Source of the DNA: Saccostrea cucullata
Lineage: Eukaryota
Reading direction: 5' to 3'
Length of the DNA: 64,000 bases
NCBI RefSeq assembly: GCF_032062105.1
Contig: NW_026939883.1
Span: 1-64,000, forward strand
In this document: positions 6,428 through 24,411 of the stretch, in pieces
Layout of the letters: each line of letters begins with the position of its first letter
How positions within the stretch are numbered: the first letter of the stretch is position 1
The notes under the pieces: model-generated
Database searches by the model: none
What the model was told of the DNA's origin: nothing
What the model saw: the letters and a program-made list of their open reading frames with translations, nothing else
Position numbers and translations under genes: made by a program

Positions 6428-13882
<7,455 letters not shown>

Positions 13883-15453: not shown

Positions 15454-16400
15454 TTTTTGTCCCCCGCTTTCGCGAAAGCGAGGGGACATTAAATCTCATT
15501 CGTCTGTCCGTCAGTCTGTCTAGCTGTCCGTCCGTCTGTCAGTCCGTCACAAAAACTTTAACCTTGCCCATAACTTTTAATTTAGTAGAGCTATGACTTT
15601 CATATTGCACATGTGTATTCCTTGTGATAAGACCTTTCTTTGGGTACCACCAAATTTGGCCTTTTGACCTTGACCTCGGAGTTTGACTCACTTTTACACA
15701 AAAATTCCAAACTTTTACTTTGGCTATAACTTCTGATTGGTAGATATTAGGACTTTCATATTTAAAATACACATATATATTTTTTGTGACAAGACCTTTT
15801 ATTGGATACCAACAACTTTGACCTTTTGACCTTGGAGATTTACGTACTTATGAAAAAACTTTAACTTTGACCATAACTTTTGAACGGTAAGGGCTAGGGC
15901 TTTCATACTTCATATATGTAATTCTTGTGAGAAGACCTTCCATTGGATACCAAAAATTTTGACCTTGACCTTGGAATTTAACCTACTTTTCAAAAACTTT
16001 GACCTTGGCCACAACTTTTGAACAGTAGACACTAGGACTTTCATATTTCACATATGTATTCTTTGTGGCTAGTCCTTTCATTTGATATCAACAACTTTGA
16101 CCTTTTGACCTTGACCTTGGGGATTTTTTGTACTTATGAAAAAACTTTAATCTTGACCATGACTTTTGAACGGTAAGGGCTAGGGCTTTCATACTTCACA
16201 TTTGTAATCCTTGTGAGAAAACTTTTCATTGGATACCAAGAACTTTAACCCTTTGACCTTGACCTTGGAGTTCAGTGATGATTTCTAAATAAATGACATA
16301 TGATAGGGTGTTCATATTACACACAATATGTCATAAAAATGACATCTCACCCAAAAAGACACCGAAAGCGGGGGACGACAGTTCCTTGAATTTGCTTGTT
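15454..16400 (+). mobile_element. Helentron/HINE-like non-autonomous element with internal ~145-bp tandem repeats
   Basis: Starts in a T-run; subterminal IR GTCCCCCGCTTTC / GAAAGCGGGGGAC; 5' hairpin; (GTCC/GTCT)n microsatellite; about 5 internal AAAAACTTTAACCTTG...TGACCTT units; ends CTTGTT. Confidence 0.8.
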
Positions 16401-17356
16401 TTATGTACAGGTATGTATTTTCCAGATAATGTTTTCAAGTTTAGGTATGGATAAACTAAAAAATATTACGGCTTTAAATTCATAAAGGCACATATTAATT
16501 ACAAATACGTTGAAAACATATGCAATTTTACAGAAATCATGCTTATGTTCAATTGCAGGAAACCTTCTATAGTTGAATTATTAACATTTTTCTGCTAAGG
16601 ACGAAAAATAATAGTTAGACCAAGAACTTCCCGATACATGTAAAACAATTTCACTATGGCTAATTGTGACGTTTTGGATGGGGGGCGCTTACGTTTATTT
16701 GTTTGTCTACGTCACAATTTAATTGACTTCACAACCTAACAAAAGGAAAAAGTAAGTATAGCAATTTTTTCTCTCTTGTATCTCTTTAAGACTTGATCGT
16801 TTTTTTTTCTTCAAATGTAAGAGTTCAGTGTTTGAAATCGGCACCAATAGATACGTATTTTTTTTTATCCAACATTCGACACTTTAAAAATTTTGTAAGT
16901 TTTAATTAAAGAAAATAAATTTAAATCTTATGTTTTTTACCTGGGATAATTCAAAAAAAAATTCTCAACTCAATTACTGGCAGAAATATCAATCACCCCC
17001 ACCCACTCCCTAATCCCACAACAATAAGTTACAGTGCCGTGTAAAGGCTATATAAAAAAAAATAAAAAATAAGTCTAGACCTAAAGAAAAAAATCTTTTT
17101 ATTCTTTGTGAAGATTTTCTGCTATTCTTACGTCATAATTACATTATCACGTGATCAAACGTCACAAACAGTGTGACGTAACAATCATCACTAAACAAAA
17201 CAAAACAGTATTGAGCTTGGAAGTAGAAGGTAAATTTAATCCAGAGCTTTGTTATAATTCTTCTTGTCAGAATTTTTTTTAGATAAATATATTTCATGGT
17301 ATTTTTCAAATTTCTGAGAAATATTATTGTTTCTTCATGTAGCAAGGCAAGCAACT

Positions 17357-20300
17357 ATGGAAATCGATTGGAATGAGATTTTAGATTTCGGCGACAGTGC
17401 TGTCACAGATGTTGTGAGTTTAACTTTCTTATACAAATGATTTTTTTATTAAAAGAAAAATAAGTTACGTCAGGTACCTGTGACAAATACATGCATGCAG
17501 TAGCTAGATTGTCAGATTTTATAATATCTTTTTCGTATTTTTTTAAAAATGGTTGTCGAATGCATATAATCATTAATATGATTTCAAAACTAAAATGATC
17601 AACATTGGCAACAAATGTACATCTACAAGCAATTTAAAGAGGGATGGGGTGGGGATACTTTTAATATACTGCTTTTCATGATATTTAATCTTTTTTTATC
17701 AATTATATCACCCATTGTTTTTTAGGACTCTAAGCTAAAGATCTTGAAATTTAGTTATAGTTGGGCAGATGCCGTTGAAGAGCAGGAGAGACTTGTGGAG
17801 GTGAATAATATAATATAAGGAGTAAAGTACATATACATGTTGTAGCTTTGTAACAAAAGAATGAGGCGTATTCTGAGAAAAGACATTTTTAATCAATTAT
17901 ATCACCCCCTCTGCGTTTTAATATTTTTTAATTTATTTTTCAATTTGATATGTGAAAACAAAAAAGAAAAAGCTTCATGTAGTATTTGTTTATCCTAACC
18001 ACTATCAGTATTGCATTATTTTAGTGATTCAAAGCTAAAGATTTCTTGAAATTTATTTTTATAGTTGGGCAGATGCATTTACGTTTCTATCATTTGAAGA
18101 GCAGGAGAGACTTGTGGAGGTGAATAATAGAATATAGGGAGTAAAGTGCATATACATGTTGTAGCTTTGTAACAAAATTTATGATTAAAATAGGGAAGAA
18201 AATTTATTTTGAAATTCAAATGATTTCTCTAGTGGCATACTTATTATACAATTATAAAACAAAGTTTGTAATTGCCACTCTCACTTTTAAACAATAGAAA
18301 AAAAGGTTATCTGTAAAAGTGTGCATGGTCATTTTATTTTCTTTGATATTTTAGGCCCAAAAGCAAGAAGACATGGAAAGAGTGCTGAATAAAGAGATAA
18401 CAGGAGAACAGACAAAGAGCAAACACATTGACAATGCCAGGTATGATTGTCAAATACAAATCTAATATCAGCACATCATATAGTTTTGACATATTTCAAT
18501 CCTTTATAATTATATGTACTCTAAGAGTTTTAAAATATTGAGATTACCAATAACATAAACATTGTATTTCTCTACACAGAGAGGAAACAGATTTTGGCGA
18601 TGAACCTGTTAAAGACTGGGTAAGTGATATTGGAGTTACATATTATTCTCGATTTAAATTTAATAAAACCCTGAACATAATTATATATCAGCCTTTACAT
18701 GACATAAGTTTCACATTCTGTTCCCTTTTATTTATTAATCCCATGTAGATGTACCAGTATTTATTCTTTACTTACAGAGAACAAAGCTTCAGATTTTAAA
18801 GTTTGACTATTCATGGGCAGAGAGGGTTGAGGAAGAGGAAAGAAGAACTGAGGTATTTTAGTCCATTCAAATTTACTCAATGGGGATTCCAATGATAAAT
18901 ACCACTGTTTGCCTTTGACTAATTTTGTTTTTGTTTTATTTACAGTTAGCTAATACTGTGGGACAGAGAACTGGAGTGGAGAGAAGCAGACTTGAGTCAA
19001 CTCATAGAAGAAAGCAGACAGACAACTTCAGGTACTGATTCAATTTTATTGTTACAGTTTTTTACTTTCAGTTACATTAGAATATTTTTTATTTTGTACT
19101 GTAAATAATTTATAGCTCTGTACTTGGATTAAACAAAATCTGACTGAAGATAATTAATTAAATTTAAAATAAACAATTTTAATAAAAATCTTTTCTTTTT
19201 AATTTGAATTTTTGCCACCACAATTTGTTTATAATATATTGCATAAATCTATGGACTTGAAAATATAATAATAAAAACATCATTGCAAAAAATGTTTACA
19301 ATATTGATCGTATCAACACTTTCCTTCATTAGATATGCGGATGTCAAAATGAGTTCGCTATATCCGTAAATTCGCTATATCCGTGTTCGTACTAAACGAG
19401 TTTTACTGTAATAAAAACATCATTGCAAAAAATGTTTACAATATTGATCATATCAACACTTTCCTTCATTAAATACGCAGATGTCAGTTAAGTTTCAGTG
19501 TCTAGTGCAGTACAAAAACCCCTTTTCATTTTTTAGGGAAAAGATATATGTTGCAAAGAAGCTTCCAAACAACTCAGTAAAAAGACAAAACTATTCTCGA
19601 AGAATAAAACAAGAGGTAAAGTGTTCATTCTTACATACAGATATGAGTATATGCATAAATGTACGTTATACATGTTTATATTAATTTATCAGGAACATTT
19701 TTTTCCTTCTTGAATTTCTTTTAACTGATTATTTTCTTGCATTCAGTAAAACAAGGCAATAAAATTACATTTATTTACCTATTTTTTAGATCTTCAAACC
19801 ACCAACAGAACAAAGAAAGAATGTGAACATATATAACAAGAGAGATTTTCCTAAAGAGGGCCAACAAATTACAAACACTAGTCTAACAGAAAAACAGTCT
19901 ACCACTGAAAGGATAAAGATAGCAGAGCTGAGAAAAGCAGATAAACAAGTTATCCCAGCAGAAAAGAAGTCAGCCCGGCTTATCACAGAGAAAAAGTCTG
20001 CTGAACTTATCACAGAGGAAAAGTCAGTTGAGCTTATCACTGAAGAAAAATCAGCCCAGCTTATCCCAGAGGAAAAGTCAGCCAAGCTTATGACAGAGGA
20101 AAAGTTGGCTGAGCTTATCACAGAGAATAAGTCAGCAGAGCTTATCACAGAGGAAAAGTCAGCCGAGCTTATCACTGAAGAAAAGTCAGCCCAGCTTATC
20201 CCAGAAGAAAAGTCAGCTGAGCTTGTCACAAAGGAAAAGTCAGCCCAGGTTATCACAAGAGAAAAAGTCAGAATGTGAACATTAAAAAATGAGGAAAAGA

Positions 20301-22111
20301 GAGCTTATCCACTGACAAAAGTCAGCCCAGGTTAACACAGAGGAAAAGTCTCCCACTGAAAGGATAAAGATATCACAGAGGAAAAGTCAGCCAAGATTAT
20401 CACTGAGGAAAAGTCAGCCGAGCTTATCACTGAGGAAAAGTTAGCTGAGCTTATCCCAGAGGAAAAGTCAGCCAAGCTTATCACTGAAGAAAAGTCAGTC
20501 CATGTTAACACAAAGGAAAAGTCAGCCAAGCTTATCACAGAGGAAAAGGCAGCTGAGCTTATCACAGAAGAAAAGTCAGCTGAGCTTGTCACTGAGGAAA
20601 AGTCAGCCAAGCTTAACAAAGAGGAAAAGTCAGCCAAGCTCATCACAGAGGAAAAGTCAGCCAAGCTTATCATTGAGGAAAAGTCAGCCCAGGTTAACAA
20701 AGAGGGAAAGTCAGCCAAGCTTATCACAGAGGAAAAGTCAGCTGAGCTTATCACAGAGGAAAAGTTAGCTGAGATTTTCTCAGAGGAAAAGTCAGCCAAG
20801 CTTATCAATGAGGAAAAGTCAGTCCAAGTTAACACAGAGGAAAAGTCAGCCAAGCTTATCACAGAGGAAAAGTCAGCTCAGCTTATCACAGAGAAAAAGT
20901 CAGCTAAGCTTATCACAGAGGAAAAGTCAGCCAAGCTTATCACAGAGGAAAAGTCAGCTGAGCTTATCACAGAGGAAAAGTCAGCCAGCTTATCACAGAG
21001 GAAAAGTCAACCGAGCTTATCTCAGAGGAAAAATCAGCCCAGGTTAGCACAGAGGAAAAGTCAGCCAAGCTTATCAATGAGGAAATGTCAGCCATGCTTA
21101 TCACTGAGAAAAAGTCAGCTGAGCTAGTCACAGAGGAAAAGTCAGCCAAGCTTCTCACTAAGGAAAAGTCAGCCCAGCTTATCCCAGAGGAAAAGTCAGC
21201 AAAGCTTATCACAGAGGAAAAATCAGCCCAGGTTAACAAAAAGGAAAAATCAGGCAAGCTTATGACAGATGAAAAGTCAGCTGAGCTTATCACAGAGAAA
21301 AATTCAGCCAAGCTTATCAATGAGGAAAAGTCAGCCAAAGTTAACACAGAGGAAAAGTCAGCCAAGCTTATCACAGAGGAAAAGTCAGCTGAGCTTATCA
21401 CAGAGGAAAAGTCAGCCAAGCTTATCACAGAGGAAAAATCAGCCCAGGTTAACACAAAGGAAAAGTCAGCCAAGCTTATGACAGAGGAAAAGTCAGCTGA
21501 GCTTATCACAGAGAAAAAGTCAGCCAAGCTTATCAAAGAGGAAAAGTCAGCCAAGCTTATCACAGAGGAAAAGTCAGCCAAGCTTATCACAGAGGAAAAG
21601 TCAGCCCAGGTTATCACAGAGGTAAAGTCAGCCGAGCTTATCACAGAGGAAAAGTCAGCTGAGCTTATCACAGAGGAAAAGTCAGCCCAGCTTATCACAG
21701 AGAACAAGTCAGTCCAGCTTATCACAGAGAAAATGAAGTCACCAAACCTTGGATTATCAACAGATCCAGAATGTCTAGTGGTGTCAAGGAATCAAGATAC
21801 TCCAATCAATACAGAGAAATCATTTTTACATGAGGTATTACATAAAATTTTCAAAATTTATATAATTATTTATTTAATCTATAAATTGAAGCAGAAGGAA
21901 ATTTTAAGATGTGCCTGTCTAAATTGAATATTTCTTTGCTATCTTTTCCCAATTTTTTTTTATACTAGTATATTTGTTGTATGAAATCCTTACACTATAT
22001 GTACATGTGTATGTAATAACAATGTGACAATTCTACATTTCCCAGCTTCTGAAGGAAGACATTGCTGATGAATACATTAACAATGATAATGAACGTGAAG
22101 ATGATGATTAC

Positions 22112-22142
<31 letters not shown>

Positions 22143-22341
22143 GCCTGTTTGGCCCTAGAAGGCTCTTCTTCTTTGGTGTTGACTATTTTAAGGTAAAATT
22201 TATGCTTAATGACCTTAAAACCAAATTTTATTTTTATTTTGCTTGTGGATAAAATTATTTAATCTTTATGGGTTATTTTTTATCTTAACTTAGTGTACAT
22301 GTATTAAATTTTTTTAGGGTGCTAAAAAATCCATTTGTTGA
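17357..22341 (+). CDS. Unnamed 10-exon gene, putative highly derived SLBP-like protein with a 9-aa repeat array (array frameshifted in this sequence)
   Basis: Phase-consistent GT-AG exons 17357-17413, 17726-17800, 18355-18440, 18580-18619, 18778-18852, 18946-19031, 19537-19615, 19790-21834 (disrupted), 22046-22192, 22318-22341; AATAAA at 22424. Protein starts MEIDWNEILDFGDSAVTDVDSKLKILKFSYSWADAVEEQERLVEAQKQEDMERVLNKEI... The gene structure is well supported; the SLBP relationship and last-exon frame are inference. Confidence 0.7.
18022..18119 (+). pseudogene. Degenerate duplicate of exon 2 of the unnamed gene
   Basis: Near-copy of 17726-17800 plus downstream intron (…GAAGAGCAGGAGAGACTTGTGGAG|GTGAATAATA…) with insertions. 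Confidence 0.8.
19955..21730 (+). repeat. 27-bp coding minisatellite, about 60 units, consensus ATCACAGAGGAAAAGTCAGCCAAGCTT = ITEEKSAKL
   Basis: Tandem units directly visible; interrupted around 20258-20370 and by a 1-nt loss near 20987. Confidence 0.97.
22101..22141 (+). repeat. (GAT)n microsatellite encoding poly-Asp
   Basis: GATGATGATTAC(GAT)10 within exon 22046-22192. Confidence 0.9.
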
Positions 22342-22991
22342 AAACAAACAAAAGCTTGATGGAAGGACAGAAGAATAGCTACTAGTTTGGAGGAAAACTG
22401 AAAAAAAATTGTCATATAAATGTAATAAATGTCAGTTATTTACACAATCAAGTGTTAATTATTTATGATTTCATATAATCAAAATAAGGTACAGAGGTGT
22501 ATTTAGTATGCAGTTCAGTAACAATTACATGTGTATATGTAGAAAAACTCGGAATGTACATGACCATATACATGTTTGAAAAGAGATACAATTAAGAATT
22601 TGCCTGATGAATGAAGTGACAAAGCCTTGGAAATCAGGGATTACTTTTTTTGTTCTTGTCAAGGAATTTTTGCTTGTTGGTAGTTCACCTGTAAATGTTT
22701 GGTTGGGCAAAAAGAAAAATACTATAGTAAACTAAATATGTTTCCTGCTGGTCTGTCAGCTTAAAAGAAATCATTCAAAAGTGAGTTAACTTTAAACTTG
22801 AAACAAATTTGAATCTAAATTAGCCAAGGATGCTTTTATTTACTAGTATTTATTTATATGAATGCAAAACGAATGATCATCTTAGCAGAACAAACGTATA
22901 TACATGAAAACACTTCAAAAGAACAAACTTAACAAACGGGCAAGGGGTAAATCTAGTCTTTATGACACCATTAGGGTGTGATTTGCAAGTC

Positions 22992-24270
22992 CTTTCTTGT
23001 CCTCCGTTTCGTGAAAGTGAGAGGACATTAAATCTCATTCATCTGTCAGTCTGTAAGTCTGCCAGGTCTATCCGTCTGTCACAAAAACTTTAACTTTGGT
23101 CATATCTTTTGAATGGGACTTTCATATTACACATGTGTCTTTTACTCGTGACATTAAGACCTTTCTAAATACACTACAATTTTTTATCCCCTTACCTTGA
23201 TCTTGACGTTTGACCTATTACCCAGGGGCGGATCCAGCAATTTTTGAGGGGGAGGGGGGTTCGAGGTTGTGCCCCCAGCACTCATGCATAGAATCACAGC
23301 ACGGCCACTTCAAGTCCGTAGCTACATCTTATAAGAAGGGGTGACCTCCAAACACAGTTGACAAGCAAAAACCAAAAAACCCCTATGCAACACACTCTAA
23401 AATCTTTTTTTGAGAGGGGGCTTTCTGTAACTTTTTTGTTCGGTACATTTATAACATTCAAATGCTTGAATCTGCGTATTTTCTTGCGACAAAAAATGTG
23501 GAGAGAGCTTCCAAATCAAAATATTTATGAAAACTACAGCAAAAGATTATTCTCAGAAAAAAATGACCCCCCCCCCCATCTGCATACTACGGGAACATTT
23601 CAAATCTTTCTCTTCATTGATTATGTATACTTCTAAAAGTTAGTTACTGCTGAAGATGGTCCAAAAATGGTATATCTAAAGTTCGCGGGAATCTTCCTTG
23701 CATGTTACTTGTGGATGTTCGGAGCCCTTAGCCGGGGTTGTGAAGGTACACGGAGGAAAGCATAAACATGTACACGAAAATCTACAGATTTAGCCAGTAG
23801 AAAGGACAGAGATTTTTGTATTTTTTTTCAAATTATTATTTAATATATATATCTATATTACAGAAAAAACACAATCTCTCTCTCCCTCCCTCTTTATCTC
23901 TCTCTGTGTGTACAAAAATAAAAGGGGGGTGTTTCCAACCCCCGGAATCCCCCCTCTGGATCCGCCAATGTTATCAATGAAAGTCCTTTCTTAACTATGA
24001 ATTTTGACCTCTTGACCTCGAAGTTTAACCTACTTTTCAGAAATGCTCCTTATGACTTTTGATTTAGAAGAGATAGGGCTTTCATATTTGACAGGTGCAT
24101 TACCTGTGGCAAAATATTTCCGAGCATGCTATGATTTCTGACTTCTTGACCTTCATGTTTGACCTATTCTTTTCCAAAACACCTCCAAAAACTTTGATGA
24201 TAACTCTTGAATGACATATGAAAGGGCGTTCATCATATTTGACACAACAATAAATAATGACATATTACCC
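22992..24270 (+). mobile_element. Older, degenerate copy of the same HINE-like family as 15454-16400
   Basis: Shares GGACATTAAATCTCATTC, the GTCT microsatellite, AAAAACTTTAAC and AATGACATATGA...GGGCGTTCAT blocks. Ends approximate. Confidence 0.7.
23223..23970. mobile_element. hAT-like MITE nested in the HINE-like copy
   Basis: CAGGGGCGGATCCAG...CTGGATCCGCCAATG TIRs; possible 5-bp TSD TTACC/TTATC with one mismatch. Confidence 0.7.
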
Positions 24271-24411
24271 ACAAAGGCTGTAAAACTTAGGATATTAAAA
24301 ATCAAAATGTTTACTGTTTTAATATAGTGTTGGGTCCTGATCCCAGCTATGATGTTTATAAGAGGTCTGCACGTGTGTTTGCTCTGCTCTCAAGTTTGTA
24401 TTGTTCAGTGG

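Follow-up and report, generated by a model that had tools for sequence, protein, structure and literature searches.

The stretch analysed here, referred to as the window, comprises 64,000 nucleotides (nt), free of N, from the forward strand of contig NW_026939883.1 of the oyster Saccostrea cucullata (RefSeq assembly GCF_032062105.1), and all coordinates below are window positions. Between 17357 and 22341 it holds an unnamed gene that encodes two copies of a short module, each ending in a motif like the SLIP1-binding motif (SBM) known from SLBP, eIF3g and DDX19, and that belongs to an undescribed oyster family built on this repeated module. An initial annotation, made from the letters of the window, had placed the gene at 17357-19830; the exons reported there hold, but the gene in fact continues to 22341 through a repeat exon and two more.

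The gene, its copies and its transcripts

The first seven exons listed below and the start of the eighth have AG/GT ends and form a single open frame when joined. The features of the locus, which include an upstream cassette with cAMP response element (CRE)-like sites, are as follows.

17128-17229, + strand: conserved upstream cassette with tandem CRE-like sites TTACGTCA (17128-17135) and TGACGTAA (17174-17181); function inferred
17357-17413, + strand: exon 1, coding part; module 1 part A (ILDFG..VTDV); RNA joint 17413-17726, GT..AG
17726-17800, + strand: exon 2; module 1 part B, KLKILKFSY followed by SBM-like SWADAVEEQE; 75 nt, phase 0/0
18025-18120, + strand: degenerate intronic duplicate of exon 2, its motif broken by an insertion
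18355-18440, + strand: exon 3; charged linker; 86 nt, ending in phase 2
18580-18619, + strand: exon 4; module 2 part A (DFGDEPVKDW), a duplicate of exon 1 that some RNA contigs leave out
18778-18852, + strand: exon 5; module 2 part B, KLQILKFDY followed by SBM-like SWAERVEEEE; 75 nt, phase 0/0
18946-19031, + strand: exon 6; basic and polar linker with the length and phase of exon 3; no remnant of an RNA-binding domain
19537-19615, + strand: exon 7; basic segment seen in the young subfamily only
19790-21834, + strand: exon 8; 2045 nt, with a 27-nt tandem array at 19967-21733 (~65 units, EEKSAKLIT-type)
22046-22192, + strand: exon 9; acidic tract and family C-terminal motif FGPRRLFFFGVDYFK, the motif being seen at all loci compared
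22318-22341, + strand: exon 10; coding end and stop (GAKKSIC*), with a similar end in member P0003

The two SBM-like motifs are present in exons 2 and 5 as the initial annotation had reported, and they occupy the same position within their 75-nt, phase-0/0 exons. Exons 1-2 and 4-5 are an internal duplication (shuffle p=0.0003 for exon 2 against exon 5 and p=0.002 for exon 1 against exon 4), and the linker exons 3 and 6 still share length and phase, their sequence likeness having gone (p=0.54). An AATAAA lies at 22424, downstream of exon 10.

The gene lies in a region (~16411-24276) that is common to the window and three or four near-identical copies (on contigs C102, C9462, C1569 and C9137), a shared duplicated unit of ~7.9 kb whose copies are scattered among unrelated neighbours. 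That these copies are mere haplotypes is ruled out by the flanking genes of the window unit, RPB6 and a gene at 25-45 kb, both of which are single-copy in the genome; because near-identical copies exist while the neighbouring genes are single-copy, the window gene is a recent, dispersed duplicate. Three frame switches interrupt its exon 8 (between 20237-20319, 20319-20384 and 20978-21031), in which the first stop lies at 20276; the window copy is either truncated after ~330 residues by frameshifts or carrying assembly indels. A decaying duplicate without a full-length protein, which would be compatible with either reading of the family weighed below, is suggested by these switches and by a stop far upstream of the last junctions, by the broken state of the C1569 copy (a stop in exon 2 and a frameshift), and by letters at several RNA joints that fit the sister copies and not the window copy. 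However, exons 1-7 and every splice site are intact, the indels fall in a tandem array rich in A, the kind of sequence in which long reads often err, and exon 8 is open throughout in the C9462 and C102 copies, so that we put decay at somewhat less than an even chance.

RNA contigs and a few raw reads, at low depth, span the joints between exons 1 and 2 (exact, GT..AG), 2 and 3, 5 and 6, 6 and 7, and 7 and 8, and a further joint in the RNA contigs connects exon 3 directly to exon 5, leaving out exon 4. Spliced transcripts are thus seen, but because several of the spliced contigs carry sister-copy letters, expression and splicing are demonstrated for the subfamily (the window gene or close copies) and not for the window copy itself. 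Within the introns, two short repeats (17440-17490 and 19345-19410) have very high RNA depth and loose read ends, and are probably elements resembling miniature inverted-repeat transposable elements that are present in many other transcripts.

A modular family in oysters

Exon 5 has 150 matches in the genome, and a genome search with a 24-sequence profile returned 323 candidates; 147 of the 150 that were scored reached E<=0.001, and one scored copy holds a stop. The genome contains at least 147 motif exons, ~46 of which were read at the nucleotide level. The loci compared follow a common plan, in which an LDFG exon, a motif exon and a charged exon are repeated two to four times. Then come a low-complexity exon that differs from locus to locus, an acidic exon with FxPR[KRT]LF[LF]F at its end and, in many cases, a basic exon that closes the gene. 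In protein terms, members carry one to four tandem modules of ~43 residues (LDFG..KLxILKFxY[SN]W[ASV][DE]xVExxE), spaced 65-76 residues apart in 19 of 25 intervals (67 in the window gene), and then a variable low-complexity middle that is coiled-coil-like or repetitive. Most of them have an acidic tract that closes with FxPR[KRT]LF[LF]F, and many then end in a basic amphipathic segment. This last segment (RxxKKFFG-like) is found in members P0001, P0002, P0010, P0012, P0031 and P0048 and is missing from the subfamily of the window gene, and in one subfamily (P0012, P0022, P0034, P0044) a Cys-rich variant replaces the FxPRxLF motif. The terminal basic segment recalls membrane-targeting helices, and FxPRxLFxF may be likened to cyclin-docking (RxLF) motifs, so that membrane binding and cyclin docking would be putative readings of the two.

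A HMMER search of 1.84 billion representatives gave 33 proteins, and the named true matches from this and two further searches are all from oysters: S. cucullata, S. echinata, Magallana gigas, Crassostrea angulata and C. virginica. Matches to P0024 and P0025 and to APOBEC2 or OspC were judged to be chance, the ESM Atlas yielded no usable match, and Pfam scans of single exons and of ~25 full-length members gave nothing above cut-off. Several 'uncharacterized' RefSeq oyster proteins (XP_062598850.1, XP_061184917.1, XP_034332392.1, XP_022319640.2) are true homologs with modules identical in type, and most share the C-terminal motif; such homologs carry either no name or one drawn from their composition (trichohyalin-like, golgin-like, titin homolog), and they have no Pfam family. 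Our literature search found no paper on six member identifiers and none describing such an oyster family. As judged from these sequences, the family is restricted to oysters, strongly expanded and composed of largely disordered proteins.

To count residues by position we used 67 distinct modules chosen by their upstream half only. Numbering from the tryptophan as 0, W is present in 66 of these, V+4 in 66, E+5 in 65 and E+8 in 65; S or N stands at -1 in 61, A, S or V at +1 in 63 and D or E at +2 in 58, while +3 and +6 vary. The full W..[VM][ED]..[ED] pattern occurs in 63 of the 67 (+1 is V or I in 16), and the same position pattern recurs among database proteins. Synonymous sites are saturated (pS ~0.87, against pN 0.23) and the invariant residues are encoded by mixed codons, which argues that selection acts on the protein; the modules are under strong purifying selection. 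The upstream half of the module (LDFG, KLxILKFxY) is equally invariant (pN 0.14).

A cassette like that upstream of the window gene (TGACGTCA/TGACGTAA), holding two or three CRE-like sites and conserved together with a splice donor downstream of it, lies upstream of exon A, the LDFG exon, in nearly all family loci (including L018, L020, L026-L031, L047 and L048), and is also present upstream of members in S. echinata and C. virginica; at chance level, ~6% of 200-nt windows contain TGACGT. In the window it ends at a putative splice donor (gt at 17230), and it is probably a promoter together with a non-coding first exon. At three loci (C14497, C13287 and C12298) the cassette is repeated before each module, suggesting that promoter and module are amplified as one.

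It might be supposed that a mobile or selfish DNA repeat carries the modules along, with no selection on the encoded protein, as the dispersal of copies among unrelated neighbours, the possession of a promoter cassette of their own and the shared ~7.9 kb unit would allow. Against this, the amino acids are invariant despite saturated synonymous sites, a codon pattern that already contradicts the idea; the 75-nt length and splice sites are conserved and kept across Saccostrea and Crassostrea/Magallana, transcripts are annotated and spliced, and no transposase was seen within the ~7.9 kb unit. We regard a mobile repeat as highly improbable.

The putative SLIP1-binding motif and candidate partners

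In the structure of SLIP1 with SLBP, the contacts are N93, W94, G95, D96, V98, E99 and E102, corresponding to positions -1, 0, +1, +2, +4, +5 and +8 (PMC3763545). All seven contact positions fit in the oyster family, and its near-invariant residues (W, V+4, E+5, E+8) coincide with contact positions. A blind search of 177,635 PDB sequences with the exon-B (motif exon) profile gave two matches at E<=10, both of them known SBMs: the zebrafish SLBP peptide 4jhk_C (E 0.065) and the human eIF3g motif (E 2.7), the latter functional according to the literature. Among ~4000 other W-centred 10-mers from the DNA examined, the family matrix gave the highest score to the oyster eIF3g motif (26.6 bits, within a family range of 22-42) and the third highest to that of oyster SLBP; the two window motifs reach 37-39 bits. 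AlphaFold models of one and three modules (pTM 0.39 and 0.22) have a helix beginning at W and no compact fold, and an Atlas model has pLDDT 0.43; a conserved island in a disordered region with a predicted helix from W is what would be expected of an SBM. The suggestion of a SLIP1-binding motif in the initial annotation is thus well supported in sequence terms, by contact positions, PDB search and family matrix, and the motif is conserved in related species, across Saccostrea and Crassostrea/Magallana. What the oyster motif shares with those of eIF3g, SLBP and DDX19 (PMC3763545; PDB 4JHK) is [SN]-W-small-acidic-x-V-E-x-x-E, a disordered N-terminal region and the predicted helix; in contrast to these, it occurs in one to four tandem copies, is fused to an invariant LDFG..KLxILKFxY extension, and stands in proteins without an RRM, helicase or RNA-binding domain.

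The same annotation had gone further and proposed a paralog diverged from SLBP that had retained and duplicated the SBM, had lost histone stem-loop binding through a collapsed RNA-binding domain, and acted on histone mRNA. The SBM-like motif is indeed followed by blocks alignable by eye with human SLBP, and the quoted peptides are literally present (EDMERVLNKEI in exon 3, DFG in exon 4, ESTHRRKQTDN in exon 6, PNNSVKRQNYSRRIKQ in exon 7 and FKPPTE in exon 8); moreover, hhalign places the module profile on the oyster SLBP motif over 11 columns (E 0.008, probability 5%). The resemblance of the quoted blocks to SLBP is, however, at chance level. An intact SLBP lies elsewhere in the genome, on contig C9382, with both RNA-binding-domain exons above the Pfam cut-off, and shuffle tests against it gave p=0.80 for exon 6 and the first of these exons, 0.25 for exon 7 and the second, 0.63 for the start of exon 8 and the second, and 0.38 for exon 3 and the SLBP motif exon. 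By hhalign the family profile matches the RNA-binding-domain exons of oyster SLBP with a probability of 0.1%, and no match to PF15247, the SLBP RNA-binding domain, is listed for any exon or member scanned by Pfam. Intron phases are not shared either, being 2/2 for the SLBP motif and RNA-binding-domain exons and 0/0 for the 75-nt family motif exon. A scan of 63 database proteins turned up no RRKQ, FKPP or similar string; such strings occur in the young subfamily only, and close relatives such as P0011 already differ in them. DFG belongs to part A of the repeated module and stands in exon 1 too, before the first motif. Finally, the window motif is closer to that of eIF3g (p ~0.001) than to that of SLBP (p ~0.05). 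The SBM-like motif is all that the family has in common with SLBP (PF15247), from which it differs in lacking an RNA-binding domain or any remnant of one, in its intron phases and in its many copies. These comparisons largely refute the SLBP-paralog reading, to which we assign very little probability; the analyses made gave no specific pointer to histone mRNA or the germline, none of them having been aimed at those roles. The Pfam scans likewise matched neither the eIF3g domain (PF12353) nor an RRM in the window exons and members.

Our best model, to which we give slightly better than even odds, is that the family consists of multivalent disordered ligands or decoys of SLIP1, CTIF or PAIP1, and the bivalent adaptor or decoy foreseen in the initial annotation remains the leading model. 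SLIP1 is a dimer with two sites ~65 A apart (literature), and CTIF and PAIP1, which occur metazoan-wide, bind the same motif class (preprint 10.64898/2026.07.31.742013). Each SBM-like helix would dock in the SBM groove of a MIF4G adaptor (SLIP1/MIF4GD, CTIF or PAIP1), and a member with at least two modules could fill the two sites of one dimer or bring several adaptors together. Docked members might then compete with SLBP, eIF3g and DDX19 or, alternatively, link the adaptor to the binding partners of the KLxILKFxY segment and the C-terminal motif. The family would thereby influence mRNA export and translation initiation as a multivalent decoy or scaffold and would not be an RNA-binding protein; its SBM may be a product of convergence or of the capture of a short motif, and not what remains of a decayed SLBP gene. 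The ligands of PAIP1, CTIF and MIF4GD together with coronavirus NSP3 (preprint 10.64898/2026.07.31.742013) offer a precedent for the groove as a shared, competable site on three metazoan adaptors; unlike NSP3, the putative oyster competitor is a host-encoded multigene family, and the likeness is in groove use, with no sequence relationship claimed.

The main rival is that the whole 43-residue module (LDFG, KLxILKFxY and the W helix) binds a different partner or self-associates, for example as a structural or sperm protein family, and that the SBM match is a convergent acidic W-helix. An upstream half as invariant as the SBM half and with no counterpart in SLBP, eIF3g or DDX19 would be explained in this way, as would coiled-coil-like or repetitive middles and weak PDB matches; yet the fit of all seven published contact positions with variation at the non-contact positions +3 and +6, the rank of known SBMs at the top of two blind searches (PDB and family matrix), and the absence of a predicted compact fold for single or triple modules speak for the SBM, and we consider a different partner distinctly the less probable explanation. 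Several observations nonetheless weigh against adaptor binding: the E-values of the PDB matches fall short of significance; residues at 0/+4/+8 would line one face of any helix; KLxILKFxY and LDFG, though invariant, are absent from any known SBM and may indicate another partner; M. gigas members carry Q at +5; RNA depth is low, with paralog-type letters in several spliced contigs; and the loci were first gathered with a motif-holding query, which inflates the absolute conservation given above, though not the contrast between positions. Nor were SLIP1, CTIF and PAIP1 genes located in the genome by an exon-by-exon MIF4G search, which is insensitive and found eIF4G-like and UPF2-like exons only. 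We infer their presence in oysters from the literature and from the motifs retained in oyster eIF3g (C8047:530625, L045; SWAEQVEQVE, in a motif exon of phase 2/1) and oyster SLBP (C9382:115960, L013; DWAEEMEIRD).

In the literature found, the SBM is known from three host proteins with one copy each, and a limited search revealed no dedicated multivalent competitor or scaffold family for the SLIP1/CTIF/PAIP1 groove. If the decoy or scaffold model is true, oysters would possess such a family, expanded in one animal lineage, and its dozens of natural variants could serve for motif mapping and for a direct test of the two-site model of the SLIP1 dimer. More speculatively, and with the odds against it, oysters may have amplified multivalent SBM proteins into dozens of genes under a shared CRE-type promoter which, by titrating SLIP1, CTIF and PAIP1 or moving them elsewhere, switch modes of mRNA export or translation in a tissue or stress state, the module being an extended MIF4G-binding element with a second contact (KLxILKFxY). 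Even with another partner, the comparisons delineate a family of oyster proteins that has no name so far, is marked by two conserved motifs and a common promoter cassette, and is mislabelled by composition in RefSeq.

Other features of the window

Neighbouring genes in the window include a cullin (1196-1435), RPB6 (7753-7965) and FAM60A/SINHCAF (48212-55100), and the gene at about 25000-45004 is PPP6R3/SAPS-like. A 666-nt direct repeat, 99.7% identical, occupies 9276-9941 and 10733-11396. Just upstream of the gene, 15551-16268 is a tandem array with a unit of 138-148 nt, a common interspersed repeat.
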